Positions 820-57,399 are shown, counted from the first letter of the stretch. The stretch is DNA of 63,992 nt from Zygnema circumcarinatum SAG 698-1b (GCA_037447605.1 CM074820.1:1302001-1365992), one strand, 5' to 3'. A program made the numbers and translations. Notes: a model not told the origin generated them from the letters alone.

Positions 820-1724
820 CAGGGTAGTGATATTTCCACCCCTTTTTTGGATCCAAACACCCCTTCCCGGCCGGGCAGATTTCAAAAAGGATTAAAAACG
901 GAAAATGCTTTCTTCACACCTTTTTGGAATCGATACCACCCTCCGGCAGATTTTATTTCTGCGAAACAAGGAAAATGATAACCCGTCACCCCATTTGAAT
1001 ATCCCGCCTACCTGAATCACGCGTGCGGTCAATCGCAGCCGTCGATTCCCTCGCAGATCGCAACACTGCAGATCACTATTTGATCGGCAGCCGGGCTCGG
1101 TCTCAGCGCATGGCACGAGCCCACGTATTGTCCGTACAAATGTCATACGGTCGCAACTTGAGGAACCCAAAATTTCGTACATTGAGATCTTAGACCAATC
1201 AAAAATTTCCACGTCAAAAATTTAACACGTGGCAGATGTTGATTGGCTGGGAGCTAACAATGACGAGATCTCGGGCCGAAGGACGCCCGCACTCGCTCGT
1301 GCGATTTGGCTTTGACGGGACTCGTGGGCGCTTTCCATTCGCTAAGATCGAGCCCGGCTGCAGATCGAACGGTGATCTGCAGTGGTGTGATCTGCGAGGG
1401 AATCGACAGCTGCGATTGACACACACGTGTGAAGGACGGACACCCGCGAACGATCTCGTGGCGGACGGATCTTCCGCTCGGGCAGGCAGATATTTCTTAC
1501 CCTCAAAAAAAAAATTCAGGGAGGCGGGATACAGTATTCAAAATGCGGTGACGGGGTATCATTTTCCTTGGTTAGCAAAAATAAAATCAGCCGACGGAAG
1601 AAGGTGGGTATCGATTCCAAAAAGGTGTGAAAAAAGCATTTTCTGTTTTTAATCCCTTTTGAAATCTGCCCGGCCGGGAAGGGGTGTTTGGATCCAAAAA
1701 AGGGGTGGAAATATCACTACCCTA
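820..1724. mobile_element. Non-autonomous foldback / hAT-like element with ~300-bp imperfect terminal inverted repeats
   Basis: 820-1017 is the reverse complement of ~1513-1724, and ~1019-1128 of ~1322-1428. Ends read CAGGGTAGTGA ... TCACTACCCTA (CAGGG/TAGGG asymmetry as in Ac/Ds). No transposase ORF and no recognisable TSD. Confidence 0.7.
1195..1246. promoter_or_regulatory. Inverted ERSE-I dyad (copy 1), in the spacer of the foldback element
   Basis: CCAAT caaaaattt CCACG, 14-nt spacer, CGTGG cagatgttg ATTGG; both halves are perfect CCAAT-N9-CCACG. Confidence 0.55.
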
Positions 1725-1948
1725 TCATTTTCCTTGTTTCGCAAAAATAAAATCTGCCGATGGAGGGTGGGTATCGATTCCAAAAAGGTGTGAAAAAAGC
1801 ATTTTCCGTTTCTAATCCTTTTTTAAATCTGCCCGGCCGGGAAGGGGTGTTTGGATCCAAAAAAGGGGTGGAAATATCACTACCCAATATCAGGTGTGAT
1901 ATTTTTCGAGGGTAGTGATATTTCCACCCCTTTTTTGGATCCAAACAC
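1724..1948. repeat. Extra tandem copy of the foldback right arm (1724-1885) plus a truncated left-end stub (1909-1948)
   Basis: 1724-1885 repeats ~1557-1722 almost exactly; 1909-1948 repeats AGGGTAGTGATATTTCCACCCC...GGATCCAAACACC of 821-861. Confidence 0.85.
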
Positions 1949-4651
1949 CAGATTTTCTGGCGTTTGAAACGAGTGTCAGCAGCAGGATTTTATCCTGCGT
2001 CGCGATGGCTCCAGTCCTACAAGTTTGACCGTACCAGTCATTCTCAATCCAACGGTCCTGCTGTGCCGTGCCACCCGATCTCGATTGGCGCAATCCAACG
2101 GTCGAGGAGCTGCGCGGCGACGACCACCCCCCAGAAGGCACCAACGGTCAAAACGTGACCCGTGACACGATCCATCCGCGATCACAAGGCCGGATATCTC
2201 GCAGTCGTAATCCGACGGTCCAAGATCGTCGGATTGCCACGTGGCGCATTCAGAGCGAAGCCGTACCCTTCCTCTCGCGGCGTTCCAATCGTACGCGCCG
2301 CTTGACGTGACGTGACGTGACGGATCCGCGATCGAAACCCTTCCTCAGTGACTTTATCAAGGCTCTGCGCACCCGCATTCGCGACCATGTTGGCGCGGAC
2401 CATGACCTGCCCAGAGCCCGCCGAGCCTCTGAGCCTTACGGTAGGCAAGAAGATTCATGGAGGACCTGGAAGATGCTGTGTTTGAACCGAGCAATTTTAC
2501 AGCAATGCGATCCTCCAACCAAGCCATTTCTCTGGCCAAGTTCAGTTCGTGCCAATTTGTCATCCCCCATCGCATAGGTCAAGTTTGACAAGTGCTTTAC
2601 AGTGCTGGTGCTGGTACTACCAGCGACGTCATTGGACAACTAAGCATCGTTTCAACAACCTGAGGGATATTGGAACCAATGCCAAATTTCAGGCGGAAAT
2701 GTAGCTGGAGCTCACTGGATGGGCATTTGTGTTTGATAATGCTTCAGGAGTTCGTCCCATGCTCTGCAAATTCCAACCAAATAGCTTCTAACTCCAGGTC
2801 TAGGTTCTAGGACTAGGTCTTCCGATGTTCACTCAACTCCATATTAGTATAAGAGCCTTAGTATAAATGCTGCCAAGCCACATTTTCACCACTACAGGAG
2901 GGCGTGTCAACCTTTTGACATTGCGCTTGAGGTTTAATTTGGAGATAATACTTTCAGATTTCACTTCGACTACCGTAGTTCGAGCAACGCTGCATCGCCT
3001 GCCTTGGTTTACAGCGCTGCCTCGCTTTTTATCTTACTTTTGCTCCTTAGACGGCCCACAGGTGTTGGTCCTTCCGGCCGCCCCTCCGGGTCCCGCATGG
3101 CCGGCCTTCGAGAGCAGAGAAAAGCAGAAGCAGAGTGCCCCTCAAAGCTTTTCGTTTGTTCTTAGGTCATTTGTAACCGGTAAGAGCCTTAGGTTCTCCA
3201 TTTTTTCTTTGTCGAAGTACATGTCATGGCATCGCCATCTTGAAATCAATGTCAATTCATCTAAGGCCATCTTCTGGTTTCGAATGTTATTTCTTCAGAA
3301 AATGTCACAGGTTTAGATCTTTAGCTGAACACGCCCTAGCACTGAGATTTTATCAGTCCCTACTCCAAAAAAGTCAGTAAAGGAGAATATTCTCCCGCGA
3401 GAGAGCACCCTGAACTCTGTAAACCATTACTGTACGCGAACGATACTTGTGCTATGTTGCAGAACTGACTGCTGCCTGGCCAGTTGCCAAATTAGGGCAA
3501 ACTCGAGCTGCACTCGACTATGCGGCCCCTCAAGTATCTCCCCATCAATCTGAACCACCGCTTCCTCAAGAGCACAACACACTGCCTTTCAAACAATTGA
3601 AAGAAATGCATCACCCGGTTGATCCGTTTCTGCCAAAACTTTACATTCAGCAAATGAAAAATGACTACAGCAAAGCAAAACGAGTGAAGTGAGGAAAGGA
3701 GAAGCCGAAATTTCTCAATGGCTGTATTCAAAGGGACACCAATGACTATTGAATACAGCTACATTCTATCACACTAGGAAAAGCTAGCTGGCAGCTCCGA
3801 ATGCAAATGCAAGTTTACTTTTCCTCCTCGTGCACTGCTGCCTATACGAGTAGATTGTATGACATCCATTGATCAATATTAATATCCTATCAATAAGGTA
3901 TATCTCTATCTGTCACTGTTCATTATGTTTTCACGGGGCATGAGCCCATACTTTCACCAATAAGCTCTCACAGCGGCGATAATGGTCAGTGAAGCTTTAG
4001 AGAGGACATTACAATTCAGTACTTGGATCGAGAGTGCGAAGACAGGGGAATAGTCTGCTATCCTGAGCCTTTTGGGGACTCCATGGCAGCAGGCGGAGCT
4101 TCCTAACTGCCAGACGCCACTAACCCTAAAATGGAGCAGGAGAACATGCCAAGTAGATAATACTCCAGAGCCAATAAAACATAGGGTTCAACTTTGCTGC
4201 TTAAAAGAAGCCAAATATAGATTCCATATCATCTGCAAACAAATCGCATAAAAACTGATCGACAAAAGATTTCTTTATGTCCTCCCACCCTCCTACAAAA
4301 GCAGGAATTCGTGCTTCGAAGGATCGACGGCTGAAGCAAGTGCAACAGAATCAAAAGACCGGCAATGCCTCAACATTTTATCAATGAGAGAGCAAATGTG
4401 AAGCTAAAGCATGGTTGCACAGCTGATATTAAGAGGAAACTAGAAAGTTTCACATTTGCATCAGTCACTACATTCTCCACATATTGAGTGGATTCCTAAA
4501 GCTGAGATTCCCATCTCAAAGAGAAGTCAAAGAAATCCCTACAGGCAGAGAGCTAATGGACTGTACTGCTGTAAAAGCCTGCCTAGGAGGTCAAAATTTG
4601 GAGAACTTGGCAATTATGGAAGAAGAATAAACAGCGAAGGGCAGAACTTTC

Positions 4652-5173
4652 TCATAAATCATAGAGAACACTCCAAGAGACGTCCTTCAACCCATTCCGA
4701 AAATCTGCATTCAATGTCCAGTTATTCTCCCGAAGCTGAAGGTAAGGCCGTTGCGTGATGAGATTGCATCCAATTTTCAACTTCAAATCCTGCTCCATAG
4801 TGAAGTTAAACACTTTTTGGCAAAGCTCCACCGACGCTCTTGTCTTCCACTTCTGCGAATTTGCATGCAGGTACAACCCTCCCTTCAAATCTAACGTGCG
4901 AGCTCCATTGTCCGTCAGTTCAATCGACTTCTTCCCCTTCACACTGTATGTCACTTCCCTGGTATCTAAGTCTATTTTCGTACCCACATCTATGGTGGTA
5001 AGGAGCTGTGGGAAGAACTTTTTGCGAATCTGCAGCGCCCCTGCCGCTCTCCCTGTGACAGTGTTGAGCCCGCCCTGCACCTGCAGCACCACGTTGCCTT
5101 CCCCTACAAAGTCTTCCTTTGCGTGCAGCGCCAGCTGCCTCTCCTCGGAGCTAAACCGCATGGAGGTCTCCAT
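4652..5173 (-). CDS. OEP21: Chloroplast outer envelope pore protein 21 (single exon, 173 aa)
   Basis: METSMRF start, LHAKE, KKSIELTDNG, FNFTMEQDLKLKIG and PYLQLRENNWTLNAD...W.V.YDL C-terminus match the OEP21 family signature. Confidence 0.93.
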   Translation of the reverse strand: METSMRFSSEERQLALHAKEDFVGEGNVVLQVQGGLNTVTGRAAGALQIRKKFFPQLLTTIDVGTKIDLDTREVTYSVKGKKSIELTDNGARTLDLKGGLYLHANSQKWKTRASVELCQKVFNFTMEQDLKLKIGCNLITQRPYLQLRENNWTLNADFRNGLKDVSWSVLYDL

Positions 5174-5507: not shown

Positions 5508-5690
5508 TTGCGATACGATTGTATATCGAGATGCACTGGAAGTCGGTATACCAGTTATCGATAGCAAGATATTTCGCGATACAGCAGCGTTCTCCTTGAA
5601 CCTTTTATTCTTTTACAGCAAAGAACGATACGATGCGATGCAAAATGATACGATACGATATGCTATTGTAGATATTATTGATACATTTGT
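5508..5690. repeat. CGATA/CGATAC-rich degenerate pentamer array between OEP21 and OBGC2
   Basis: Repeated cgatacgat / gatacgatacgata blocks; a similar array lies at 22436-22590. Confidence 0.6.
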
Positions 5691-5802
5691 CGCCACGTGG
5701 CGCGGCGAGAAGCAGGCTGAGCTGGAAAGCGGAGGCGGCGGTATTGCAAACCTTCAAACCTCTTTCTTTCAAATCCTAACCCTAATTCGGAGCAGGGCCG
5801 CC

Positions 5803-10553
<4,751 letters not shown>

Positions 10554-10756: not shown

Positions 10757-11012
10757 TTGGCGCGGAAACAAGCGCGCTCGGCGGGTTCAATTTTTTCTTG
10801 TGCCCAAGCGTTTGGAGAGGCAGGCGACGCCGAACAGGGGCCGCTCCCTTCCAATGAATAAATGCCACGTGGCTATGGGTCCTGTAAGGTGTCGCCACGT
10901 GTCGGCATAAAGTGTTTTTGAAAGGAGTGTTTTTTGTTGACAAAAACACTCCTCTCAAGGGGGCGCGCTTTCACTGCGAACTACTTGTCGAGCACCTTCC
11001 AATGACGACATG
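10757..11012. repeat. Dispersed repeat A (copy 1), G-box/CCAAT-rich
   Basis: Shares ttggcgcggaaac...gggttcaatttt...ccacgtggct...gacaaaaacactcct...ccttccaatgacgacatg with 13114-13323. Confidence 0.85.
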
Positions 11013-11079
11013 CCATGTGTACTGTGCGGCCAATGATATCATGCCACGTATACAGTGCGTCCAATGGTGACACGCTACG
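10999..11079 (+). promoter_or_regulatory. Three direct ERSE-like units at 31-bp period
   Basis: CCAAT-N9-CCATG (10999), CCAAT-N9-CCACG (11030, perfect), CCAAT-N9-CTACG (11061); another perfect ERSE-I at 10851-10869. Confidence 0.5.
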
Positions 11080-12169: not shown

Positions 12170-12506
12170 AAGGCGCTGCTGCTGCTGCTGCTGCTGCTGC
12201 TGCGAGGGAAGCGGGCGAGGTCGAGGGCGAGAGCGAGGGCAAAGGCTAGGGAGCTTGCTCTTAGGGCGTGCAAGCACCGAAGGCGCAGAGCGACAGGTAG
12301 ACACCTTTGGCGATCAACTCCGACAAGGCGTCGCCATGTATGCTCGTTCCCTTGCTTGAGCTTGCAGATTTCTTTATTTCTTCCGTTGTTTTCAAACTTT
12401 GGTATTGTTGAGGATTCCCTCATTTGAGGAAGGTGAAAACATTTGCTGATTGCTTTTTCCCTCGCGTTTTTTTCTGCAGGTCACAAGCAAGAGTCAGTGC
12501 TTCCTT
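12170..12506. repeat. Long inverted repeat, left arm
   Basis: Reverse complement of 12732-13094 (poly-GCT, GAGGGC repeats, then unique sequence through ...gagtcagtgcttcctt). Confidence 0.9.
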
Positions 12507-12731: not shown

Positions 12732-13094
12732 AAGGAAGCACTGACTCTTGCTAGAGACCTGCAGAAAAAAACGCGAGGGAAAGAGCAATCAGCAAATATT
12801 TTCACCTTCCGCAAATGAGGGAATCCTCAACAGTACCAAAGTTTGATTGAGCTTGCTGCTTTGAAACCAACGATAGAAATAAAGAAATCTGCAAGCTCAA
12901 GCAAGGGTACGAGCATACATGGCGACGCTTTGTCGGAGCTGATCGCCGAAGGTGCCTGCCTGCCTGCTTGCTCTGCGCCTTCGGTGCTTGCAGGCCCTGA
13001 GAGCAACCTCCCTCGGCCTCGCCCTCACCCTCGCCCTCGCCCTCGCCCGCCTCCCTCGCAGCAGCAGCAGCAGCAGCAGCAGTAGCGGCGCCTT
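12732..13094. repeat. Long inverted repeat, right arm
   Basis: See left arm; the spacer between arms is 225 bp. Confidence 0.9.
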
Positions 13095-13113
13095 GCAGGA
13101 CAAAATACATTCT

Positions 13114-13323
13114 TTGGCGCGGAAACGAGCACGCTCGGCGGGTTCAATTTTTTTTCAATCATTTTTTGTTCCCTTCCAATGAAAAAAATGCCACGTGGCT
13201 GTGTGTCCTGTAAGGAGTCGCCACGTGTCAGAAAAAATGTTTTTTTTTTGACAAAAACACTCCTTTCAAGGGGGCGCTCTTTCACTGCGAACTACTTGTC
13301 GAGCACCTTCCAATGACGACATG
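13114..13323. repeat. Dispersed repeat A (copy 2)
   Basis: Direct repeat of 10757-11012 with an internal deletion; abuts the IR right arm. Confidence 0.85.
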
Positions 13324-14473
13324 GCATTCTCGGTCTAATCCCACCACTGAAAAGCATGGTCTCGAAGGATCGTTATTGGAATTCTGCAGCGGTTTTTATT
13401 TTCCTGTCCTGACGGATTTGACCAGCGAAGCTATGAATCTTGACCTGCCGAAGCTACAGATTTTCATCCGGTTGACCTATGGAGTTTGGCTTCTGGATAA
13501 GGCATACATGGCGTACGAAGAGGAACGATAGCAACGCAATTTGAAAGCCTCAGCGAACAAGGTAAACATTTTCCAAAACTTTTGTAACAAAACCAAAAGG
13601 CAGCTCCGTCTAAAATCCATCAACTTTGTCAAAGCTGCAGGTTCCCCTCCCTATAGGCCTTAGACTTTAATCGTTACACACTTATTGGAATTCAAAACCA
13701 TCATAATGAAAGGTACTTCCTTACCGAGAAAACAATCCCATGCCGATCACTCTCAAGTCTGAGACCTCCTGACAGGGGCCTTCAGTCTTCAGTCTTCAGT
13801 CAGAAAAAATCTGTAGAAAAGGAAATCGAAACTCTTCATTTCTCACGCAGGAGATCCGCTGCCTGAACAGTACGGAGTTTGATTTTATCTCCGTACAGAG
13901 AATGCCAAAATTGAGTGTAATCAAAGTTGGACCTTTATGCATTACTAATAATGCAGTGACATTAACCCTGACGTGTTCCCATTTAAGATAGCTATTGCAG
14001 CTTTTCCGCCCACACATAAGTGGACAGCCCTCCAATGCACAATTTCCAATACCCAATACAAAAGTTAAGCTAAGTCTGAAGATAAATAAACCTAACGGAA
14101 TAAATAAAACTAAGGGTAAACGGCTCGGTGCTGATTTTTTTTCTAAAAACTCACTCTTTTCTAGTAAGTTTAATCTAATTGCGTTGCCAGCAGAGTGTGG
14201 TTTGCTACTCGTCCTCTTCTGCCTCATATCATCATCAATATTGAGGCATCCTTCAGAAGCCGACCGAACCTGATCACTTTCCACAGATACAGTAAGAGGG
14301 CTCTTCCAGATCTGTCCCACCATGTATCCAAAGGTTGACCTTTTCCTGCCCATCACACAAGGCCACCTTCCTTCTCAACAATCTCCTTCCCTCCTCCGTC
14401 CTCATCTTGTTCCATCCTTGAAATCGCAGGTAGGATGTCTCAAATTATTATCAATAATTCCGGTATAAGGCAT

Positions 14474-17400
14474 TCATAAGGCGGCCCCTCCTCAACAGAG
14501 GGACCCTTATAAGAGCACACAGCCACACCCTCCCTCCGCCCCTTTGGCCACCTTCTGCACTCCAATCCTCTCTTGAAAAGCTTCCAGCTGCTGCACCACC
14601 TCATCAAACTCCGGTCGCTTTTCGGAGCTCCCTTGCCAGCATGCCTGCATTATGCTTGAAAGCTCTTCTGGAATCCATGCAGGTATTTCAGGGCGGAGAC
14701 CCTAAAACACAAACGTTTCACCATATGAGGTTTGTCAGCTGCGAGATGATGAGATCTGTCTACGTCAGGCTTCTGGAAGGAGGACATTTGAATAAAGCAG
14801 ACAATGGAAGAAGCGGGTAGCGAATAAGCTGCTGTGTGTAGTAGTGGGACAGAAGGGGGTGGATGACGACAGTGAAGTTCGTCTAAGGGGCTCAGTTACG
14901 AATGGTTTCAGTGTGAGTATGAAAAGTCTTACCGTTACATCTTCACCTATCAGGCAGTGCTTTCCTAAGAGCTGGTCACTGAAACGAGTTGAATGCAGAA
15001 GGACTGAAACCTGAACAATAAACCTGACTTCACTTGCCTTATTGACGACAGAATAGGCGAGCTGAACAAAAGTCAGGTTTCGAAAAGGATGATCCCCTGT
15101 CATAATCTCCCAGAACACAATGCCGAAGCTGTACACGTCGACTTTACGATCGTATGGCTTGTGATCGATAATCTGCAACAAAAGACCGGCGGAAGAAATG
15201 GGGCCAAAGTTGTATGATGTTAAACATCTCAGAGGGCGAAACGTAAGGCCGCAGAACATGCTAACACCACGCACTGAATAAGCACAGTTCCAGCACAATG
15301 CAAGCAATAGCAAATGAATATAGTTTTCAAGCATATACACCAAAGCAATGCAAGTTGTCTCTGCCACTCTTCGGCTCGCGAGTCATCACGTTATCCCTTT
15401 CCTTCTCATAATCCTCTTCCAAAGTTGCAAACTTCTCCCCTTCCTCCTCCTTCTTTCTTCTTCTTCTTCCTTCTCTTTCTTTTCTTCTTCTTCTTCCTTC
15501 TTCCTTCTTCTTCTTTCTTCTTTCTTTTCTTCTTTCTTTTCTTCTTTCTTTCTTTTTTCTACGGTGCCCTACACCTGTCCTATGACTCCCTTCACCTTAT
15601 CTGACCTTAGCTTTGAAAGCTTATAACAATTTTCTCCCCCTCACCTCCGGTGCCATCCATCGGACTGTTCCTGTTTCACATGTCATATCCACCGGATTCG
15701 CTGCCTCCATACGAGCAACCCCAAAGTCTGCGATCTTTGCGTTCGTTTGATGATCGAGAAGAATATTTTCAGACTTGAGATCCCGGTGCACAATTTTGAG
15801 GCTGTGCAAATATCTGCATGCATGACAGAAAGTCGGTCTAAGGGTGATCTTCCAGGACTTAGAATCATGGCAGCTTCTTTCGGATGTGGGCTTCAAGTCT
15901 GAGTGTGAGTTTGCTGCCTATACTCTCCAATAGGTTTGAGCATACTATAGTTTCCCAGCGGTTGGACTGGCTGATATGCTCCTACATAATGCATAATGCC
16001 CCTATAACTCAAACTCAGCTCAAACACGTAAAAACTGCGAGACAGAAATAGAGCCCCTCACACTCATAAAAAAACAGTGACCGACAGAAAATAAGCAGCC
16101 CAATGCTTCAACAACAGAACGCTGCCGAAATCACGAGGAAACACGCTTCCTCGTAGACCCACCTCGACCTTTTCCTCGAAATTTACTAGTTTTGTACATT
16201 GGGGGTTTGAAAGTTTTGATTGCGCACTGCAAACCTCTCGCCACATCCAATGCCAACTTGAGGGCTTGCTTTTGGGGCAAAGGAGTCCGCCTGTTGGTAA
16301 GATAAGTCTTAAGATTCCCCCCTGACATATACTCCGTCATTATCACCCACAAAGGCTGCCCCTCCCGGGGAAGTCCCTCCCGTGGTGCGCGAAGATTCTC
16401 GGCTTTCAGGGATGCTCCAATGAACTGCAGCCACGTGGCAGAGGCTACCGGCACCTCAGAAACTTTCTCAAATGCCATATGTGGGAGAGCAGGCGAAGAA
16501 GGAATGGCTTAGAGCAGTGCATGCAGGGAAGGGGAGCTGTACCTGGACCACATTTGGGTGCTTTAGAGTGTTCCAAACTGCAATCTCCTGCTTGAAGGCC
16601 AGCTTCAGATTATCCAGCTCCGCCGCAGACAGCTGTGCCGGAAACTTGCATACCTTCACAGCGACATCGTCGTTCTGGTACAGCCCATGAAACACGCTGC
16701 CAAAGGCTCCTGAACGGATCAAGGAACATCCCCACACATTATGTGAGGTTAAGGACGAACCGAGCCTTCACTCTATCCGTTTCTGTTCTTCTTGCTAAGA
16801 AGGAACATGATTAACTTTCTTGTTAAGAAGTTCCTAGAAAGAGACTTATAACTTCCTCTGCACGTGCGGCTTATGCTCTTCTGAAGTACAGATCTCAGAC
16901 AGCGAGGTTTAAGGCGCTGAACAATTCTAACAGAGAGAGAGAGGGGGTGAAGGCAGCACCTGCAGCCAGCAAGTTCGTGCATAGAACCTGTCTCCAAACC
17001 CGCAGCATTTCCCTATTTGCTGTCAGACAGAGCTATGCTCGTGGAGGTTTCCATTCATACAATTCATCACGTGTCGTTTAGGGGTTGCATTTGCGTATTG
17101 CCAATTTATGAAGGTATGAAGGCTTCGTCTTGGGACATCCAACCCACTTTCAATCATCCACAATCCATACGCTGCGAGTGAATGCGGGAAAAAATCGATT
17201 CACATACAGATACATAGTTCCCAAAAACAGATGCTTTGGATATCGCAATGAATTTAAAGAAAATTACCCTCAGAAAGTAGACTACGGTCATATTGCTTTC
17301 TCTAAAACACACTCATTGCCGGCATCCTCACCGTCGACATGTCAACCTCCCAAGCGTATGTCTCGTTCTCATTTATGTTTCGCCCCGAGTCGAGCACCTT

Positions 17401-25713: not shown

Positions 25714-25745
<32 letters not shown>

Positions 25746-38010: not shown

Positions 38011-38175
38011 GGCTTTGCTTTGCTTTGCTTTGAGAAGCTATGGCTACTTCAGCTGCAGCCCCACCATGAGGCTTGCTCTTCCAGCTGCTTCTCAGGGGCA
38101 GAGGGAGCTCAAATAAGGTACAGGTGCAGAGTGGGGAGGGAGACAACTGGGCATTCTCCCGATACTGTAAACCGT

Positions 38176-38334
38176 CCAATAGTAACACGCCACGTGTACC
38201 ATTAGCCAACGTGGCGTGTCACCATTGGACGTGCTCGTCAAAGAGCAAAAGGATGCCCTCCGCGCCATAGTGAGCGTCGTTCAATAATGACACGCCACGT
38301 CGACATGATTGTACACGTGGCGTGTCGCCATTGG
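38176..38334. promoter_or_regulatory. Two inverted ERSE-I dyads (copies 2 and 3: 38176-38228, 38281-38334) in the EGY2/glutaredoxin bidirectional promoter
   Basis: Three perfect CCAAT-N9-CCACG and one TCAAT-N9-CCACG; inner spacers 15 and 16 nt. Confidence 0.7.
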
Positions 38335-38473
38335 AGATGCTCGAATTTAGGTCGCCATGGAGACAGCCTCCGTCTGGGCTGGAGAGGTGTGAGAGTGGGG
38401 GGCGCCTGTTGGCAGGCCAGGCAGCGGGAGAAGGGAGGGAGCGCTGAGAAAGGGGGGAAGAGAGCAGGCCGCC

Positions 38474-40145
38474 ATGACGCGCTTCGCCGTATTCACGTTG
38501 CTTGCCGTCTCCTCCTTCCTCTCCGTCGCCATCGGCCCGGCGGAAGCTTTAGATCCGAAGGCGTTTGTCAAGTCCACTATTGACTCTCATCCAGTGGTCA
38601 TCTTCTCCAAGTCTTACTGCCCGTAAGCATCGCTCTGCTCCTCCCTCTCCCTCTCCCTCTCCCCGCCCCTCTGTCTCTCCCTCTTTTCGTCTCCTTCTCG
38701 CCTTCGGAATCGCCTTATGGGGCTATAGTGACATCACCATGCTCATCTGTTTTGTGATAATGTTCATGGTCATGTAGGATGGTTGTACTATGGGTTTTCC
38801 GGTGGTCATGATAAACGAAGCATCCGCCTGTTTTGACCAGCTTTTTTATTTTTATGCAAATTTTCGCTGCAGGTATTGTAGGAGAGCTAAGCAAGTCTTC
38901 AAAGGTCTAGGGGTGACGCCTTTTGTGGTGGAGCTTGATCAGCGCGGTAAGGCCTTTGTTGCCGCTTTAACGAATGGAATAAATACCTTCTAAGTGTTGG
39001 TTAAAGATTTAGTGTTTCATTTTGCAAGGGAAGGAAACGTTGCACGTCTCAGTCAGAATTCTCTGAAGGTAATTCACGTTTGAGAAATGGAAGAACTAGA
39101 TTCTAGAATCGAGTCGGTTCTGGGACTGATTTTGAATACAGAATCAAAAGTGAGTTTTGCTGCGGTCAACATATCTGTTCTTTGGAATCTGCAATTGTTT
39201 TCATTTTGTGACAAAATGTCAAAGTTCATGCTAGTTTGGGCTTTCCTCCAGACACTGCTTCATTGTATTCTAAGTTCGAATGAGCTGAAATGGGTTACTC
39301 CTAGAGTTTTTTTTCAAATCGTCTAGACGCCTCTTGTTACGACTTCCCCATGATCATCTCATCTGGTGTATCTCGAGGTCTTCAGCCATAGACTTTTCAC
39401 CCTGTTGGCGGTGCTTGTGTTTGGGTTCTAAGGATAAAAAGAAGATATTGTTCAATAACTGCTACTTACGTCTGAGAATTTCAGGAACGGTCGTGTCAAA
39501 TTGTTCAAAGTCGATTCAAGTTGGGTTGTTATCTGGAGCTAATGATTCATCCTATTGTCTTTGCAGAGGATGGCCAGGAAATTCAAGCTGCAGTTGCTGC
39601 TTTCATAGGACGCCGAACGGTGCCGCAGGTGTTTGTCAAGGGTCAGCATATTGGTGGCTCAGATGGTATGTTTTTTCCTCCTTTACCTCGTAATGTTTTA
39701 GAAGGAAACTCGTAATCAGGGGTTTGGTGCGGCCAACATATTCGCAGATTAGGGAGGCAAGCTTCTTCATCTGTTTCACTTCCTGATACTTCCATGCATT
39801 CCGCTGATGAACATACCTAGCTTTACTTCTGTGTGGAGACCTTGAAAACAATGTTGCTTGAATTGGACTGACAAGATGACTTGATCATCTAGGCATATTT
39901 CGGTCCATAGGATCTGAACTTCACATTCTCATCAGAGCACACAGATCAGCAGGGAAATTTGGTGCAGGGGGAAGGAGACGCAGGCAGGGAAATGAGAGTG
40001 TCGGAAGTTTGCGACTACGTGTGAAGAGTCTCCGTTTTGTGGTTCTGATGCCTTTTCCACTGTTGGCTCTGCAGATACTGTGGAATCGTTTGAGAGCGGC
40101 CGCTTGGCTGAGCTCGTCTCTGGCGTGGAGACGCATGAGTTGTAA
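38474..40145 (+). CDS. Class I (CPYC) glutaredoxin, GRXC3/C4-like, with signal peptide and C-terminal THEL; 4 exons
   Basis: [25 protein letters not shown] hydrophobic leader; IFSKSYCP|YC; VELDQR; RTVPQVF; HIGGSD|D; ends SGVETHEL*. Confidence 0.92.
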
Positions 40146-41002
40146 TGTTTTCAAGGATGAACTTTTACTTTTTTGAAGTAATGTCCGTAACCTGTTTGCG
40201 TGGACTGCTGGATAAAGTAACCTTTACAAGTAGAGGGTGTTGGGACACTTTTCTATGGGAAGCAAAGTATTTATACGTTGAACAATGTTTGACTCTATAA
40301 AATGGCTTCATTCGTGTTGTTTTAGCTTTCTTTCAACAAGAACAACACCTGGTGCACCTAAACTCATGTGTTAGCGCTAGGACTTTTTGCTGAACCCTTC
40401 CCGAGGTTGATCGCTGTGAGACTACTTGCTCTTGCCTTAGTGGCTGATGCTGCCTCAACTGCAGCAAACACAGATTGCTGCTCTAATATGGAATGTGCAG
40501 TAATGAGGGAATTAACATCAGGTTGCATTTCTGTTTGCAATTGCGATACTGGACATCATCACTGGCTCAATATCTGCTCCACCTTTAAAAGGCAAAGCAG
40601 AGCATTTCAAAGCTACACCCCTGTTTGCTTAATTGTTACAATGGATTGCATTGCGTTTTGTGTATAACCAAATGCGTTTCCACATAGCAAGTACTGTCCA
40701 AGATCGTGCCCGACAGCCCACTAGAGCCCGACAGCTGGTTTGTGAACTAGGAATAAACGTGCAACTCGCGATATGATGTCCCCGCTGTTCCAGGCACACC
40801 TCAGGTGATGAACGGGATTGACAGCCCGGCTACTCAACCGTCCCATGAATTGCAGTGACATCAGCATCGTAGCACAATCAGAGGGGTGCCGACTCATTGG
40901 CTGGCCTGGAGCTGGCTTCAGCACTTCAGTTCCTTGGAGCGAGGATCAAGCACTTAACCAAGCACCTCTTCATCTTGAGAGCATAACGAGGTTGCGCAGT
41001 TC

Positions 41003-42758
41003 TCAGCTACCTTTGCACTTGATTTCTGCTTCCATGTTTTCGAGTTCCCTGCAACCAGGAAATTACCTTCACTTTGCAGACCATAAAAGAAGTCATCGAG
41101 GCTGATCAACTGGAAATACCTAAATTCAACCGAGTAAACAACGAGATAACGGCCCTTGTAGCAGAGGTGAAACTCGTACACAGTCGTTAATTCATTGCAG
41201 GCACAAATGCAATGTTTGAAGATTAAAGAAGGACAATGGACATTTTCGCACCGTTTTTTGAAATCTCGTCGTCGCATTGCCTGGATAACCAAATCCTCTA
41301 ACTTCTTGTTTTCATCCTGCAGGGCTCCTACGTCTTCTTTCCTTTGCCTGATCAGTCTTTCAAACTGGCTGATTTCTTCTCGGACCTCAATCTGACGGGC
41401 ATCCACTTTGCGTCTCAGCTGATCACTAACAGCTTTAAGTCGTTCAAGTTCAGTCCTTAAATCAGTTTTTGAACTGTCCAAGGCGTTGTTCTCTTTCTCA
41501 AGCTTGAGTAGCTCTACCATGTCAGACGAAGCCCTCTGGCGGCGCCGAGAAAGATCTGCTAATTCCCATTTCAACTGATTGGACACAGGCGACAAAAAAC
41601 ACGGGTCACATATTGCATATCTATTGCCCGAGAAAACATGCTCACACATCTAGGATTTTAATTGTACAAGCACCACTGTAATGTACCTGACTGTCATTGG
41701 CTTTATGTCGAGGACGTGTTTTCCAGAGAAGAATTACCTGAATCTCAATGGAGAGCTGACTTTCGTTGTGCTTGGTCGAAAAACACATACTGGAATCACC
41801 AAGCGTCGGGTTTGCTTCATGAAAGAAGAGCCAAAGGTTATGTCACTTTTACCTTAGCTACGATTTCCTGCAGGTCATTTACCCGATTTTCCACTTCCAA
41901 CCAAAAGTGTGTTTCCAGTTGAAGGAATCCATCCATGACTGCCTTATGCTGAATAAAATACGCCGCACTCTTCTCCTGAGCTTTTGAAAGCTCAAAAAAC
42001 TCTTTCTGAAGCTCCCTGACACATCCTCCAACAATTGCATGTGTACTGTCAATCTCTTAAAGAACGCCTCACTAGAGCTTGCTGGAAGAACCTTAATATG
42101 ACATCTGCCATCTCTCAAACTCTACGCTGACGGTCAGGACAGCGTGAGAATTGATACGTCGAAAAAAGGTGGCTCACGTGTCGAGGACGCAGTAGTGTAT
42201 AGAGGAACATCACCCCATTTACACTGCCATAATCACTCTTGGAGAAAAAGTTGGCCATTTTTTAGCAAGAACTGCGAAGGTTCGCATAATGGCTGACATG
42301 GGAGCACTGTGCCACTGTTACTACCCGCTAGTGCTGAGTCATTTAGACATTTACGCCCTTACTAAGCAAAGAAATGGTAGGCATAAGGCGATGATGTGTT
42401 GTGCAACTGCACACAGATTCAGAAAAACGAGCACGGCAGGGACCGCAGCAGACAACTGACAGGACACGTCGTCCTCACTCTTTGGTCAGGATTAGCTCGT
42501 CACAATCATTTCGAAGCCTTATGATTTCTTCTTGTGTCAAGAACACTCGTTTCGGGAGTGTCATGGTGAATGAAGACTTTCGTACTGTACACAGTCCACT
42601 GTCAGAAACAAAACAATGATTAAGCCAAAAACTATTTCCAGCACCTTCGCATGCCCCTTCTCTGTCCTCCCAGTAAACAAACCCTATCAAATGCTTTCCC
42701 TCGCAATACCAACAAAACTGAAAAAGCCATTTTTCTCTCCATCGAGAACTGCCACCAT
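41003..42758 (-). CDS. Hypothetical coiled-coil protein (~250 aa, ~6 exons)
   Basis: Phase-compatible exons give MVAVLDGEK...MTLPKRVFLTQEEIIRL...VRELQKEFFEL...LKWELADLSRR...ELERLKAVSDQLRRK...ELENMEAEIKCKGS*; heptad-like L/E/K/R pattern; family not recognised. Confidence 0.6.
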
Positions 42759-42845
42759 GGCGCCTGCTCACTTGCTTGCAGCTTCAAACTTCGGCCAAAA
42801 CATCCGAGGGCGGGGCTCCGTTGAACGTACCGTGCTAACCATTAG

Positions 42846-42899
42846 CCAATCATGGTTCGTCACGTGTACAATATGTCCCACGTGGCACGCTGTGACTGG
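42846..42899. promoter_or_regulatory. Inverted ERSE-like dyad (copy 4, two mismatches)
   Basis: CCAAT-N9-TCACG, 16 nt, CGTGG-N9-ACTGG. Confidence 0.5.
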
Positions 42900-43027
42900 C
42901 TGGGATCAAGCACAGTGTGCTCATTAGTCCCGCCCTGAGCGTCCTGTCTTGACCAAACCAATCACAGCATGCCACATCAACATCAATGCACACGTCGCAA
43001 ACCATGATAGGCTTACCTTTGACAGGC

Positions 43028-43204
43028 GTACAGTACCTTCTACAGAGACCCCAGTACAGTACAGTAGTACAGTACCGTACGGTAATGCTTGGATCACCAG
43101 CTGGCAGTCAGATCATACCGTACGATTAGCCGCGTACATGTACGTTCATGTACCAATATTGTACGGGTACATGTACGAACAACCACAAAGCTGAAATTGT
43201 ACGG
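43028..43204. promoter_or_regulatory. Dense GTAC cluster (15 copies in ~177 bp)
   Basis: Counted by eye; includes CCGTAC variants, the SBP/SPL core site. Confidence 0.5.
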
Positions 43205-43642
43205 TCAGTGGCACTCTTGGGCGGGAGGGGATCGCAACTCGCGATGCTCGCCCCAAGGATCAAAAAACGACAAACCGACTTTTCCAACAGATCGGTCAGT
43301 CAAAAAACATTTTACTTCCACCCTTAGACAGACAGCTTGATCTTCCTCGACTTATTTTCGCTGCCCGACCCCAACATGACCAATCAGCGCGTTCCAGAGC
43401 TCTGTACGAGTAATTACATTCCTGATTCCTAATTTTCCTGGCTCCCGACCCGCCGACCAGAGCAGCCCTGTCCCTGCGGCGGCGGCATCTTTGGCGGGCG
43501 CTAAAAACGCCCCCGGGAGATTCCTGCGAGATACCCCGCCGCCACTCTCGCCCTCTCCCTCCCTCCCTCAGTGTCGCAGCAGGAGGCAGGCGGAGGGGAA
43601 GGAGGAAGAAACCAGGGGTGCGGAGGCAAAGGAGGGGCAGCC

Positions 43643-46286
43643 ATGGCGATAGGCGGGAAGGCTGTGCTTGTGCTGGTCGTTATTTTGAGCTGTGTGTTCT
43701 TGCAGGCTGAAGTGGTGGAGGCGAAGAAGCCGCCGCCACCGCCGTCGCCGTCCCCACCGCCCCCTTCTCCCCCGCCTCCTCCTATACAGTACACGACATA
43801 TCTAGAGGTTTTGGACACCTTGGATCTGTTCACGACGTTTAATACCTCCAGGAAGTGGTTGAAGAAGACCTGTTTAGACGTGGCGTTTAGTTACTTAAAC
43901 TTAACGACACTCTTACTTCCGACCAACAGGGCGTGGAACACCTACACGAACCAAGTTAATGGCAAGAAGCTGAAGGAAGCCCTCGCAACTGGAGATAAGG
44001 ACCTCATTTTGTTCAACCTTCTCCTTCACCACATGCTTCCTATTTACAGGTCGTATCAGGATCTCACGGTACTGATCATCCTTTTCCATTCTTTGAATCC
44101 TTTGCAACTTATGGGGAGTCTGTTAATTAAAGGGGCATTTAAACATATAGCTTTGTGCTCATGTCAGGCCTTCCAGGCGCGCCTACCGCGCAAGCATCAG
44201 CTCTATTCATAAGACCTTAGTCCACCAAAAGTCATTCGTCTTTGCCCACGTTTAGCGACTGCAATGCTAGACACCCTTTTCTTCATTGGGCTCCTTACCG
44301 CAGCACTCATCTGCTTTTAGTATCCTGTTGCATATATTATGTTTGTATGCCACGGCCTTGCCTTTGTGCGTCCTTTGGAAGGAGACCATTATGCATCCTG
44401 GCACCTCTGCTTAGACATCTTTTTCATTTTCATCCTTTATTGACCGGTTTTTTCCGCTATTCTTTCACACCCTCGGTAGAGTCAATGGAGTCTCACTAAA
44501 TTTCTCCAATGTATGTGCTTTCGCTGATGCAGGGAGTCAGCAATTTGACTCCTCTTCCTACACTTTTGGGCCCAGTTCTTTACTCATACACTAAGGCCGG
44601 TGGGAACTATGTGTTCGTAAACTACTCAAACCCGTTGTTGAATGCGTCAGTTAATCTTCCCGACGTTTTGACGACCGGATTTTTGTCAATTCAAGGAGTT
44701 TCATCCTTACTCATCCCGTTGGAGTTCGAGGCTTTACTCACTCCTCGCCCTGGACTCGTACCATGCCCAACCCAGATTCCCCCCCCTCCGATCCCCCCTC
44801 CTTCTCCTCCCCCTCCTTCTCCCCCACCACCACCTGTTCAAGTCTCTGAATATGTAGCCATTAAGCAGGCCTTGCAGTCATTCCAGCTGAACAAAACCGA
44901 GGAATACCTCAACTTGACTTGCCTCGATGTGGGCTTAGCATACACGAATGGTACGGTTCTCCTTGCGCCGGATGACGCCGCGTGGCACAACGTTTCCAAG
45001 CAGACCCGAGGTCCGGAGCTCGTGAAACTGCTGCAAGGAGACGATGCCGATTTGGTGATCTTCAACTTGCTGCTCTACCATATTATGGTCGAGTACAGGA
45101 ACTACCAGGACTTCACGGTTAGTACAACATCTGGCCCCTTCCTTTCTCTGCTGATCCTCTCCACTGTACTTGCGATGTAAGATATGGGGAATTCTCCTCT
45201 GCTGAAAGGACATCGCAGCGGTGCAGCATTTGCTTTGCAGCATCAACCTCCTTTCTGTTCAGATTCTGAATGTATAGGAAGTTTCTGGTTCAGTGAGCTT
45301 GAGCTGGCTGGAGATGATGGTTGAAGCCATACCTGAATCAAAGAATTCGGGAGCGGTTATTTTTGGTTAAGAGTCTTGGTCTCTTTGGAAACTGTGACGC
45401 TGCTTCCATAGCTTCATCCGTAGTCTCTTCACGTGCTCTTGCATGTGCGACAGTTACATGCTTTCCATTTTCTCTAAGGAGAATTTGGGATGGTACATGG
45501 TGGCCATAGGAATCGCAGTTTCTTAACTGATCATATTGCTGCTCTTGACTTTTCATGGCGCTGGCGATGTCCTTGGAGTCCTTTACTTACAAGTCCGCCA
45601 ATCGTGCTGTATTATACTGTGCAGGAGACGACTGTCGGGACTCAACTACAAACCTTCTTAGGGCTCCCACTCACTTTCGCAACCTTCACACAGCAAAACT
45701 TTTTTTACACGGATTATTCGGAGAAACAGGAGAATGCCACGATTACTGGAGTCGATCTATTAGCCGACTATGTAGTTGCCATCGAGGCAATTGATAAGGT
45801 GCTGATCCCGCTTGACATGAAGTCTCTTGTAGTTCCCAGACCGGGCTATGTTCCCTGCCCTGCTTATGCCTCATTCTCCCCACCACCCCCACCGCCATCA
45901 CCGCCGCCTCCCTCACCACCAAACGGAACCGCCGTCGCACGGAGCAGGTCAACAATGGAGTTTGTTCAGCACGAGTCAGGTCTGTATTCATGTCCATGGT
46001 GCCAACTTTCTGTAGATATATCTCTTTCACCTGTTCAGTTTCTTAGCCATATTTTCTATCGTGCTGTGCATTACTGGGCGACCATCAGGCATGTCAGTCT
46101 CATTTCACTCTGTGTGCTGAATGTCACTTCATCCAGGGCTGCTGGTTTCTAAAGCTGATCTTGCTTCTGCTGTGGTTTTTTGCAGCCCCTGCGATTGGCC
46201 GACTGTCGTGGAACGCTGTCATTGGAGTGGGCTCGCTAGCAGTGGTTGCTGTAGCAGTGGCTCTCGCACTCATGCAGAGACAGTAG
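43643..46286 (+). CDS. Fasciclin-like surface glycoprotein: signal peptide, 2 x (SPPPP/extensin-like linker + FAS1), third Pro block, hydrophobic C-terminus; exons 43643-44068, 44533-45117, 45625-45979, 46186-46286
   Basis: H1 motifs TLLLPTNRAW and TVLLAPDDAAW; LLLHH/LLLYH; H2 motifs SIQGVSSLLIP and AIEAIDKVLIP; C-terminal NAVIGVGSLAVVAVAVALALM. Confidence 0.85.
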
Positions 46287-47263: not shown

Positions 47264-47316
47264 CCAATGGTGGACTGCCACGTGTAAACTTTGTCCGCGT
47301 GGCGAACCGCTATTGG
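47264..47316. promoter_or_regulatory. Inverted ERSE-I dyad (copy 5) upstream of the ABCD gene
   Basis: CCAAT ggtggactg CCACG, 15 nt, CGTGG cgaaccgct ATTGG; both halves perfect. Confidence 0.6.
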
Positions 47317-47737: not shown

Positions 47738-50700
47738 ATGGAGCTCAAGCGGCAGAGGGTGGTGGCTCTGGTGGCGATTTGTGGAGGCGCCTTGTGTTTT
47801 GGACAGATGAGGTTAAGGCTGAGACGGATACAGAAAGAGCAGATGTTTCTTTGCGAAGTGGTTACACGGGATGGAAGTTCTGTAGGGACAGGTGATTCAG
47901 AAGAAAAGAAAAAGTCAAAGGTTTGTATTCTTGATTCTCTGTTGGAAAGCCGATGTTTGTTTTAGGGTTCTTTCAATGGGAACTGAATGGTCAAATTTCT
48001 ACGTCGGAAACTAAGTCGCAATCCATACTGAGTTAGTACCCCTTTCCATTACAAATTAGGCACCCTGCTCGTTGGGAAGACGTTTTTCTCTTTTAAGTGT
48101 ACTTTGAAATTTCTAGCAACGGAAAGTATTCGAGTGTGAGCATTCAGATGCCAGCTCAGATACGGGGTGCCTGCAACTTTTTTAAACTAAATAGAATGGC
48201 GCTTGTTGTAGTCGATAATATGCTGACTTGGATTGTTTTTAGCTCTTCCCTCCGTAGTCTTGAAATCTGCGAGAACTCGGGAGGCCTTGAACGACATGTT
48301 ATGGATTGTTGGAAGCAGGTTGGAGTGGACCGATTGTTTGCAAAACGACTAGCGGAAATTATACGAATTTGTGTCCCATCACTGTTTTCTAGAGAGACAC
48401 TGTACATAACTATTCAATCCGGACTTCTTATATCCAGAACACTTCTTACAGGTAACAGAAACTGACCTTTTAAAAAAATATATATCTTCGCTTACTTGAA
48501 GTTTAATCTACCAAGGACGCGCTTTTTGTGAAAGTCATAAACGGGTTTAACGACGCATATTTAGAAAGTACTGTTTCTTTTAAAGGCTCGGTGATTGTGA
48601 TTTTTAAGTCAACTAACCAATTTAGGCAATCCCATGGGCATCTTCTTAGTTGTGTTATTTTCGTGAGACTCCGAAGGTTGTAAGGCAGACTGTTTGTCGA
48701 CAAGCGAGGCTGTATGTCTCAAACGGTGTTGAATCGTTTTCGGAGGTGGTAATTGCAAACCGCGAGTCTGACAATATGGCATTTGATTGATGGCAGTGTA
48801 GGGCTAGTAAAACCTCCTGTGCACAATCACTTTTTGAGTCTTGGATATGGAAAGGTATGAAGAAAATGAACTAGACTCAAGATTTGAGGACTCCTGCCTG
48901 TGCTTGCAGACCGAATTGCTGCTTTGGAGGGTGTGGCTGGCCAATCAGTCGTTTCAAAGGTCAGTTTATTCCATAAACGCTGTTGCACTAAGATAGCAAT
49001 CTTGTGTGAGCATGTGTAGAAAATAAACAACCGTATTTTCACATTTTTAAATGCCCTTTCTGTTGCATCCATGAGATGTCTGTATGCTCTGTCACCACCA
49101 CGTGGCTCTCTTCGATTGGAAACTGCTATGTAGAGCCTTTCCATGTAATCCCTTTTGGCAATCTGTTTCAAGGGGGGCTCTGTCTCCCCCTCTTGACCTC
49201 TCCTGCACTCCCTACAGACTTTCTAGTAGGCCAATGTACAATCTAAGGAGTTTATCCTTAAGTAGGTTTCTTGGTCAGACAGTGATTTGTCTAGCATTGT
49301 CAAAAGTGGGTCAATCTGACGAGGGATCTTGAACATGGTGGAGGGATCAGGACTGGCCGGTATTTGCAGACATGCTATGGAGTTTTGCTGCAACAGCTGT
49401 TCCAGCCGCTTTTGTCAACAGCGGCCTCAAGTACATGCAAGTGAGTAAGCATGTCTCAAAGCAGTGAATTCGTCTCTCCTTTAAAGCTATTTACACATAT
49501 ATTCTACTTCTGCTTTTCTAAAAACAAATTCAGAGTGTTGAAAAATGATTTGGATAGAGGAAGTTTGAGTTCAACTTTCTAGACCTAATAGGGGATGTCA
49601 GACTTAAAAGTTGTTCGTAAGTTTGAGGCCAGAACGAGTACCCCGGTGACATAGCGATCCTAGTGCGGCGGAGTACTTACTTCAGTAGTTCGTAACATTT
49701 CGTTAAGTCTGACAACCCCTAATGTGGATACCGACGTTAAGGATTCAAGCATTGAGAATGGGATGTTAGTTATACTTCTTTAGATTCAAGCCTTATGCAC
49801 GTCATTTCCAGCAGTGAAGGTTCTCTGCCACATGATTATTACTATTGAGCGCTTTACCAAACAACTGTTGAATTCCTTTTGGAAGAATTTGAGAATTTAT
49901 CTGAGAACTTGTGTCATGCAGGTGCTCATTAGTTTGGCCTTTCGGCAGCGCCTCACAGAATATCTCCATCAACGTTATTTGACTAACCGTGTCTATTATG
50001 TGGCATCTACTCTTGGAGGTCTCTCTAATGCGGATCAAGTGAGGATTCCTCGCTGACACTTTCCTGTAGTCTGCAACCTCACCCTTTACTACCTGCAAAA
50101 ACTGTTGTTCTTCCACGCACGTGAGGTTTCTATTCTTAGTGTGTAATTGAACCATAATGATGGCTCAGCGCGGATACTTTTCCAATGCTGAAGTGATCCC
50201 CCGTTTGTGAGTGCTTGACATGTTCAGAGGATAGCGGAGGATGTGGAACGGTTTGCATCAGCAATTAGCGAGCTGTTCTCGTACACTTTTAAGCCAGTTT
50301 TGGACATTGTCCTCTTCACGCGGTCTCTTTCTAAGAGCATCGGGTTTGTTCAGCCCTTCATTCTATCAGCAACTCCTGTCGTCAAGAGAAATCCACTGTG
50401 CTGAAATGCGTGTATCTGAACGTCATTGGAAAACCAAACAATGGCCGTAGAATCTATTTTTCACAAAGTATGGCCTATGTGTGTATGTCATCCAGAGTTG
50501 AAATAGGCGGCGAAGAAGCCATAGAGAACCTTCAGGAGAAGTGAAAGACCGTCTCCATTTACAGCATTCTGTTTGAAGAAATTGGTACCTTTCACCCGAG
50601 GTGTTCCGCAAAACATAGGAGCATTTCTGAGGCTATTTTTGGTCATAATTGTGCCATGATGTGTACGGTGGTGGGGCCTACAGTTACAAAGGTCAGTTTA

Positions 50701-55987: not shown

Positions 55988-57345
55988 AGGCATTTTTACT
56001 CTCACTCCCCTTTTTCCAAAAAGCCGGAGGCTTGTTGTGCGCTCGGCCTTAAAAGTACTGACTTGTTGGAGGAGCGCAGCAGACTCGCGGTTTAAAACCA
56101 CAGACGATGCTTGCAGGAGCGGTTTCGTCGTATGCAAAGTTGATAGAACGGGGGGGGGGGGGAAGGTGTGGTAGAAAAAGGGAGGAAAAAGGGGGAAGGC
56201 GAGGGGTGAGAGAGTGAGAGGGGTGGAGGGTGGCTGGCCCGTAGTCCAATGGCAAGATATTTGTTTCCAGTGGTTAGGGAAGATTTTTCATTGTACAATG
56301 ATAGGTACTGTCTATTGCTGCTCTGTGTATATTCTCTACGAAGGCATGTTGGTAGCTTTCATCTTGAACTTCATAGTGACCAGCCTCATAGGCTTGGGTA
56401 GTCGTAGGATTCGTCATAGTTCTGGCTAAGAAAGAGACGATGAAGTCGCTTATGGTGGAATAATGAAGGGGCTCATTTTAAAGTGCTTGCAGGTGCGGAA
56501 GTCGAGCTAAGGGTGGCTGTGAGAGTCGTTTCTTGTTTTGTTTCCTCTTTTTCCCACTTCCCCTCCTCCCTCCTTTAAAAAAGATGCTGGCAATGTGGGG
56601 TTTGATTGAATGACTATGCACATGGATCGTAAAATTGGCCCAAATATCGCAGAACCTGGGATTGAAACTTTGAATATAGAGTCTGAAGTTTGCAGCCTTA
56701 GAGCGTATTACCTAAAGTTCTAGATCTTGAGAGCACAAGGCAGGCCTCGCAAGGCCTCGAAATTCATCTCTCTTGTGCAGTTAATTAAGCCCACAGTTAT
56801 AATGTAAGTTTCCCGTTCTGTGCTTCTTCACTTTCTTCCCCATTTTTTTTTGGGTTCCGACCGGCGTTGAAAGAACGAGTTCAAAGTCAACAACATTGAA
56901 GATACGATGTCCCATGGCCATGGGGCCATGGCCCTGGGGTCATGTCCTGTTTACCAGGCGCATCAACCTTCCGGGTGAATCAACCCTCCAGTTGGATCAA
57001 CCACTTTGAACTTCGAGCAATATTGGTTCAACCACACTCATGGGGTTCGTTAACCGCACTCGATATCCGTTGGATCTTTTTGATCGACCAATTTGATACG
57101 CGCTTCCTGCCTGAGAAGTGCTCCTTTAACCTGAACGTGGCGCCATGGCTTGGCCGCCCCCTAAACCACACGAGCCACGTCACAAACCACAAACCCAGTT
57201 TTCATTGGCTCCGGTTTTTTTCCAAAAAAACCAAGTTTCTTTCCAAAAACCGTAAACCACAAAACTCGGGCGCAAACCACAAACTGAAAACGTCGCCCCC
57301 CGTTCCAGTTTCCACTATGGCCCTCGCCTCGCCTGGGAGCGACCT

Positions 57346-57399
57346 CCAATGGTTTTTCGCCACGTATGCAATATTGTACACGTGGCGAGTGATCATTGG
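57346..57399. promoter_or_regulatory. Inverted ERSE-I dyad (copy 6) upstream of the RING ligase gene
   Basis: CCAAT ggtttttcg CCACG, 16 nt, CGTGG cgagtgatc ATTGG; both halves perfect. Confidence 0.6.

Follow-up and report, generated by a model that had tools for sequence, protein, structure and literature searches.

ERSE-I, a response element for stress of the endoplasmic reticulum (ER), is a composite site in which NF-Y occupies CCAAT and ATF6 occupies CCACG, with the spacing between the two boxes fixed at nine nucleotides (PMC1475745, PMC5499772, PMC3730095). The partner of NF-Y is ATF6 in mammals and bZIP28 in Arabidopsis. In Arabidopsis, ERSE-I is specific to tunicamycin-responsive promoters (PMC5499772), and the human genome contains 535 ERSE-I matches, or about one per 6 Mb (PMC5890977). 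Human NF-Y also pairs at fixed distances with E-box factors (PMC4889920, PMC3730095), the E-box lying on the opposite flank of CCAAT, at -12/-11 counted from its first C (PMC3730095), and human double CCAATs are found 19, 24-28, 35-37, or 43 bp apart (PMC4889920). Here, we analyze a 63,992-bp stretch of DNA from the zygnematophyte alga Zygnema circumcarinatum SAG 698-1b (GCA_037447605.1 CM074820.1:1302001-1365992), the whole of which is referred to below as the window. In this window, the ERSE-I-type half-site CCAAT-N9-CCACG recurs close to gene starts, mostly as head-to-head, mirror-image pairs (CCAAT-N9-CCACG followed by CGTGG-N9-ATTGG; dyads hereafter).

Architecture and frequency of the module

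Exact CCAAT-N9-CCACG occurred 14 times in the window, or once per 4.6 kb, compared with a mean of 0.09 and a maximum of 1 in dinucleotide-preserving shuffles. The excess over chance claimed in an initial annotation of this DNA is thus borne out, and its count of 11 perfect half-sites was too low. When spacings from N0 to N24 were scanned, there were 14 matches at N9 and 0 to 1 at each other spacing; with one mismatch or fewer allowed, 27 matches were obtained at N9 versus 2 to 8 across N6 to N12. The sole N10 match, at 13176, is an A-run indel variant of the N9 site at 10851 and lies within a local promoter duplication. The comparison of N9 with N8 and N10 that had been proposed as a control therefore leaves the excess confined to N9 within the window.

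Alignment of 20 half-sites gave the consensus T-CCAAT-[C/G][A/G]-N5-y-G-CCACGT-G, in which conservation slightly exceeds the two pentamers. Because CCACG is preceded by G in 18/20 half-sites and followed by T in 18/20, the second box is a complete G-box, GCCACGTG, with the ACGT core in CACGTG. The 3' flank [C/G][A/G] was present at 16 of 18 module CCAATs versus 40 of the 153 other CCAATs in the window (26%; Fisher p = 3e-7), and this flank is the one preferred by NF-Y at CCAAT. Each half is, by sequence and spacing, correctly described as an ERSE-I-type composite. The alignment also agrees with the earlier observation that the boxes and the 9-nt spacing are kept while the spacers differ: the N9 spacers vary from dyad to dyad and, in the dyads at 42846, 47264, and 57346, also between the two halves.

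Four exact head-to-head dyads (at 1195, 38176, 47264, and 57346) were present, compared with 0 in 100 shuffles. The six dyads listed in the initial annotation are all real, and two of them, at 38281 and 42846, turned out to be imperfect (TCAAT in the first; TCACG and CCAGT in the second). A sequence-only model trained on these six dyads and searched against the window recovered its training dyads at 40 to 53 bits and added a seventh, decayed dyad at 42958-43011. The seven dyads are 52 to 54 bp long, with inner gaps of 14, 15, 15, 16, 16, 16, and 16 nt:

1195-1246: dyad 1, exact, gap 14; center of a hAT-like inverted-repeat element
38176-38228: dyad 2, exact, gap 15; 94-146 bp upstream of the M50 protease transcript start
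38281-38334: dyad 3, left CCAAT replaced by TCAAT, gap 16; 78-131 bp upstream of the glutaredoxin transcript start
42846-42899: dyad 4, left TCACG and right CCAGT (one mismatch per half), gap 16; 57-110 bp upstream of the coiled-coil gene transcript start
42958-43011: dyad 5, decayed, 3/20 core bases changed, gap 16, 24 bits, E 2e-6; fasciclin side of the divergent promoter
47264-47316: dyad 6, exact, gap 15; intergenic, between genes arranged tail to head, 422 bp upstream from ATG 47738 of the ABCD transporter gene
57346-57399: dyad 7, exact, gap 16; also between genes arranged tail to head, 188 bp upstream from ATG 57587 of the RING E3 ligase gene

Within the dyads, the G-boxes face inward, with the ACGT cores 16 to 18 bp apart and the CCAAT centers 47 to 49 bp apart, and the dyad center tends to ACGTGTACAAT followed by ATTGTACACGT, itself palindromic.

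The module has in common with ERSE-I the identical boxes, the obligatory 9-nt free-sequence spacer, the [C/G][A/G] after CCAAT, and a promoter-proximal location. It differs in that it marks most promoters in the window, including those of unrelated genes outside the unfolded protein response (UPR), at one half-site per 4.6 kb; in that its units are mostly mirror-image pairs with an inner gap of 14 to 16 nt; and in that CCACG is extended to the full palindromic G-box, whereas animal ERSEs are without the ACGT core. With the plant G-box, a target of GBF/HY5-type bZIPs or of bHLH proteins, the module shares the GCCACGTG core and the promoter-proximal position, but the algal G-box is locked to CCAAT at 9 nt and paired in mirror image, and we know of no such partner geometry at ordinary plant G-boxes. 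Human NF-Y modules likewise have partner sites at fixed distances, often with two CCAATs per promoter and E-boxes between them, and they also occur in long terminal repeat (LTR) transposons (PMC3730095, PMC4889920). In contrast, the algal CCAAT distances (47 to 49 bp in dyads and 31 bp in a direct array) fall outside the human double-CCAAT classes, and the human NF-Y/USF arrangement was rejected as a model because its E-box is on the opposite side of CCAAT.

Half-site units outside the dyads were as follows:

10851-10869, plus strand: single exact half-site upstream of an uncharacterized gene (ATG 11747)
10999-11079, plus strand: direct triple array (10999/11030/11061) with a period of 31 bp, one unit exact and two with one mismatch; CCAAT distal to the gene starting at 11747
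13176-13195, plus strand: N10 variant of the 10851 site, in a local promoter duplication (10754-11016 matches 13111-13327)
16417-16435, plus strand: isolated exact half-site within an intron of the minus-strand protein kinase gene
46207-46225, minus strand: isolated exact half-site in the coding sequence for the C-terminal part of the fasciclin protein
49101-49119, minus strand: isolated exact half-site within an intron of the ABCD gene

The CCAAT-CCAAT distance in the direct array is the 31-bp period; the GRP78 promoter reportedly has three ERSEs in tandem, spaced by about 32 bp, and the array would resemble these. The half-site at 46207 is probably a chance match, since both the G before and the T after CCACG are absent. 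Two structural features of the same region may be recorded separately: the local duplication of the half-site-cluster promoter is direct, and an inverted duplication of ~330 bp (12174-12506 / 12732-13087) spans the 3' part of the gene with ATG 11747, including a CAG/CTG repeat.

Position relative to genes and transcripts

RNA contigs of four runs were mapped on 37400-43399, and contig ends were taken as transcript starts. The starts so obtained are ~38082 (minus strand), ~38412 (plus strand), and ~42789 (minus strand), and three dyads lie 57 to 146 bp upstream of them, with no evident TATA box between the dyads and these three starts. RNA depth was zero over the dyads, apart from one low-depth contig. 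A reading of the palindromes as an RNA hairpin or other structured RNA was rejected because the dyads are untranscribed. The initial annotation had placed five of the dyads ~90-420 bp upstream of start codons, and the measured distances of 166, 140, 422, and 188 bp (M50 protease, glutaredoxin, ABCD transporter, and RING ligase, respectively) are in line with that range. The transcribed features in the mapped interval are as follows:

37880 to ~38082, minus strand: first exon of the M50 (EGY-like) protease gene; ATG 38010, dyad-to-ATG distance 166 bp
38412-40324, plus strand: glutaredoxin gene; ATG 38474, poly(A) 40324, dyad-to-ATG distance 140 bp
42478 to ~42789, minus strand: first exon of the coiled-coil gene, bounded by the transcript contig end

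The two head-to-head intergenic regions contain two dyads each, 105 and 112 bp apart, one beside each gene, and a single dyad lies in each of the two tail-to-head regions, which precede the ABCD transporter and the RING ligase. Because there are two dyads per divergent pair and one per tail-to-head region, an arrangement of one dyad per gene fits better than a common bidirectional element; with one dyad near each transcript start, a single bidirectional element common to two divergent genes was ruled out.

In all, ~7/11 gene starts in the window have the module. Pfam matches in the window were Peptidase_M50, Glutaredoxin, Fasciclin, ABC_membrane_2, GTP1_OBG, Pkinase, RING, and the PIR2-like helical domain, and homologues confirmed an MIP1/RF298-type RING E3 ligase and OEP21. 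The neighbors of the dyads are the M50 protease, glutaredoxin, coiled-coil, fasciclin, ABCD transporter, and RING E3 ligase genes and one uncharacterized gene; these are not typical ER-stress genes, and the dyads were not found to belong to ER chaperone or UPR promoters. The glutaredoxin has a CPYC active site and a signal-peptide-like N-terminus, the latter suggesting that it may be a secretory-pathway glutaredoxin, and its gene was very highly expressed in all four ordinary RNA runs.

Some further features of the gene complement were noted. At the 3' end of the glutaredoxin transcript (plus strand, 40074-40324) there is overlap with RNA contigs that run on into the coiled-coil gene, which is convergent and on the minus strand; one of these contigs covers 40074-42015. 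This suggests overlapping convergent 3' ends or read-through at 40074-40324. An intronless gene for an OEP21-type chloroplast outer-envelope pore protein of 173 aa lies on the minus strand at 4655-5173, and no CCAAT-N9-CCACG module was found in the ~1.2-kb head-to-head region between it and the Obg-type GTPase gene (ATG 6358). A long (GA/CT)n microsatellite occupies 9290-9420, in the Obg-type GTPase gene region.

Other lineages and an animal endoplasmin dyad

The OEP21 protein of the window is 58% identical to those of Closterium and Mesotaenium and 55% identical to that of Marchantia, and a relative with 82% OEP21 identity is known as RNA contigs only, without promoter. By these identities the DNA looks like that of a zygnematophyte-type streptophyte alga. 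The first exon of the RING ligase gene (57587-58825) gave no match in an exact look-up and a homology search, and in length this exon falls far short of the annotated protein; the closest relatives of the exon are land-plant proteins or promoterless transcript contigs. The outgroup sample comprised five loci totaling 108 kb, namely, Marchantia paleacea (MIP1), Physcomitrium (MIP1), Marchantia polymorpha (OEP21), Closterium (OEP21), and one metagenome contig. One N9 half-site was present in these loci versus ~24 expected at window density (Poisson p about 1e-9), a comparison that is coarse in that gene density and base composition differ among the five. No dyad was found in the 108 kb, and the orthologous MIP1 promoters of liverwort and moss have none. 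The density of the module is therefore not a general streptophyte feature. The sole outgroup half-site belongs to Closterium sp. NIES-54 (L029:2697-2715), where ~0.04 were expected; it lies inside a FYVE/AN1 gene and has the extended consensus (CCAATG...GCCACGTG), which hints, if weakly, that a second zygnematophyte has the single unit too.

An exact-dyad scan of 241 million metagenome records returned 24 loci (L001-L024), with no algal contigs among them. Two loci (L004 and L009) were discarded as bacterial-looking chance matches, and the other 22 contigs, which, to judge by their names, may come from marine gutless-worm metagenomes, represent one homologous region in 16 distinct sequence versions. 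In every contig of sufficient length, an exon matching endoplasmin (GRP94) lies 1.2 to 2.8 kb downstream of the dyad (E 7e-19 to solved endoplasmin structures); in L005, for example, the dyad is at 5549-5601, the endoplasmin exon is at 7033-7230, and a putative ATG is ~285 bp after the dyad. As the contigs were picked by the dyad pattern itself, the invariance of the boxes is by construction, and the informative part is the recurrence of the geometry: the same head-to-head CCAAT-N9-CCACG / CGTGG-N9-ATTGG, with an inner gap of 15 nt in 15 versions and 14 nt in one and with variable spacers. The animal dyad differs from the algal module in that all its copies represent one orthologous locus, beside a textbook UPR gene, and in that CCACG is followed by G or A, so that there is no G-box. 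The endoplasmin contigs hold no further ERSE.

The initial annotation knew of no described inverted dyad, and our literature search likewise found no paper on an inverted or palindromic ERSE dyad, nor on a CCAAT/G-box promoter motif in streptophyte algae; nevertheless, the region upstream of the animal endoplasmin gene is a natural example of the same geometry. Because this geometry recurs at an animal endoplasmin promoter, the dyad spacing is suggested to reflect protein architecture and not common descent of the DNA.

Readings of the module and what it may mean

We hold, with moderate confidence, that the dyad is a promoter-proximal cis-regulatory module serving as a general promoter building block in this algal lineage, and most likely the module is used broadly and constitutively in the lineage and not as an ER-stress switch. 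A symmetric NF-Y/bZIP module in broad use had been proposed in the initial annotation, and the position, the CCAAT flank, the G-box, the spacers, the lack of alignable flanks, and the non-UPR neighbors all speak for it. The architecture of the sequence, its statistics, the place of the dyads relative to transcripts, and the restriction to the lineage are shown by the data; as to which proteins bind and what they do to transcription, we infer an arrangement of the following kind. An NF-Y trimer would sit on each CCAAT, with its histone-fold pair lying along the N9 spacer without reading the bases, such that spacer length would be fixed and spacer sequence free. On the G-box next to it, a bZIP dimer of the ACGT-core type (or possibly one of bHLH type) would act cooperatively with NF-Y, and the two NF-Y/bZIP assemblies would make up one symmetric platform ~60-150 bp upstream of a TATA-less transcript start. 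Each gene would have one dyad, and divergent pairs would have two, 105-112 bp apart. New in this picture are the distances of three dyads from transcript ends, the pattern of one dyad per gene, and the statistics on the CCAAT flank, together with the hAT setting of copy 1, the outgroup sample with its negative result, and the animal endoplasmin dyad.

Several observations weigh against this interpretation. The idea of a general promoter module rests on one 64-kb window, in which 4 of ~11 gene starts (OEP21, Obg, UvrD-type helicase, and kinase) are without the module even when two mismatches are allowed. Transcript starts are approximate, being assembled contig ends, and are given for only 3/7 dyads, and the low-depth contig (38097-38357, from one run) crosses two dyads. 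Three exact half-sites (16417, 46207, and 49101) are intragenic, and the direct triple array with its 31-bp period means that the dyad is not the sole arrangement. Finally, the four half-sites within 38176-38334 have nearly one common spacer, which points to a local duplication and not an independent origin of this dyad pair, as judged from the sequence.

A real promoter module might instead be read by other proteins, either a lineage-specific factor or complex that recognizes the whole site or a bHLH protein on CACGTG together with a non-NF-Y protein on CCAAT. We consider such readers unlikely, as the CCAAT flank matches the NF-Y preference and the NF-Y/ATF6 site has exactly this N9 geometry. 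Nevertheless, CACGTG is a bHLH E-box too, and conservation exceeds the classical boxes (GCCACGTGTAC plus the inner palindromic consensus). Human NF-Y does pair with E-box factors at fixed distances (PMC4889920, PMC3730095), but the E-box is then at -12/-11, on the other side of CCAAT, and not at +15 as in the alga (PMC3730095).

Dispersal by transposons was considered because dyad 1 lies in the following element:

821-1949: hAT-like non-autonomous element, ~900 bp followed by partial tandem copies to 1949; dyad 1 central

The element ends CAGGGTAGTG... and ...CACTACCCTA presumably resemble Ac-type hAT ends. The inverted arms (821-1125 and 1323-1723) are 87-96% complementary, and the inverted homology, with indels, runs on through both half-sites of dyad 1. 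No 8-bp target duplication is evident at 821-1949. A tandem sub-repeat of 163-166 bp at 1557-1885 and an extra end fragment at 1909-1949 were also observed.

According to this explanation, the dyads would be remnants of hAT-type miniature inverted-repeat transposable elements (MITEs) with a palindromic promoter, and function would be secondary or absent. The exactly central position of dyad 1 in the ~900-bp element and the homology of its halves via inversion fit such an origin, and to this extent the transposon-seeded module suggested in the initial annotation stands for copy 1. In the other six dyads, however, the flanks score no higher than shuffles for inverted repeats and do not align with one another, and the element end motif is absent from the window outside 821-1949, so the suggestion fails for them. 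Moreover, the N9 and inner spacers vary while boxes and spacing stay, the positions relative to transcript starts are narrow, and capture of the host's common promoter module by a transposon is equally conceivable. We therefore regard dispersal by transposons as improbable for the dyads as a set; the data are compatible either with an old transposon seeding of promoters or with a transposon using the host's common promoter module.

It is still less probable that the window reports an ER-stress (UPR) regulon, in which classical ERSE-I sites bound by NF-Y and a bZIP17/28/60-type factor would induce the genes. The half-site is letter-for-letter ERSE-I with its obligatory N9, two of the neighbors would belong to the secretory pathway (the glutaredoxin, with its signal-peptide-like N-terminus, and the secreted fasciclin protein), and the same dyad geometry occurs at the animal endoplasmin promoter. 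However, the ~7/11 gene starts with the module in 64 kb include those of a chloroplast-type protease, a peroxisomal-type ABCD transporter, and a nuclear-type RING ligase, and the glutaredoxin gene is very highly expressed in ordinary runs. The density is roughly a thousand times that of human ERSE-I (PMC5890977), whereas in Arabidopsis the element is a specific feature of promoters that respond to tunicamycin (PMC5499772). A chance or compositional artefact is refuted by the null levels in shuffles (0.09 half-sites and 0 dyads) and by the excess at N9 only, has no support overall although the intragenic match at 46207, without the extended consensus, may be due to chance, and has a practically negligible probability.

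Returning to the promoter building block, we speculate that the mirror-image double unit, with two NF-Y histone-fold complexes and a bZIP dimer locked to each, might be a structurally determined assembly older than the plant-animal split. It would have been kept in animals at a chaperone promoter and expanded in a zygnematophyte-like lineage into the main TATA-less promoter architecture, setting the transcript start ~60-100 bp downstream, with hAT elements carrying and spreading copies; this scenario is doubtful as a whole.

ERSE-I is a textbook stress-specific composite element. If the promoter building block reading is true, the same element, in a fixed palindromic form, would be the commonest promoter module in a close algal relative of land plants, and a promoter "grammar" would have been repurposed wholesale within one lineage. 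It would also provide a compact, well-defined module (~54 bp, with one copy at each gene) from which promoters could be engineered in these algae and a natural system for cooperative NF-Y/bZIP assembly and for the role of transposons in promoter spread.

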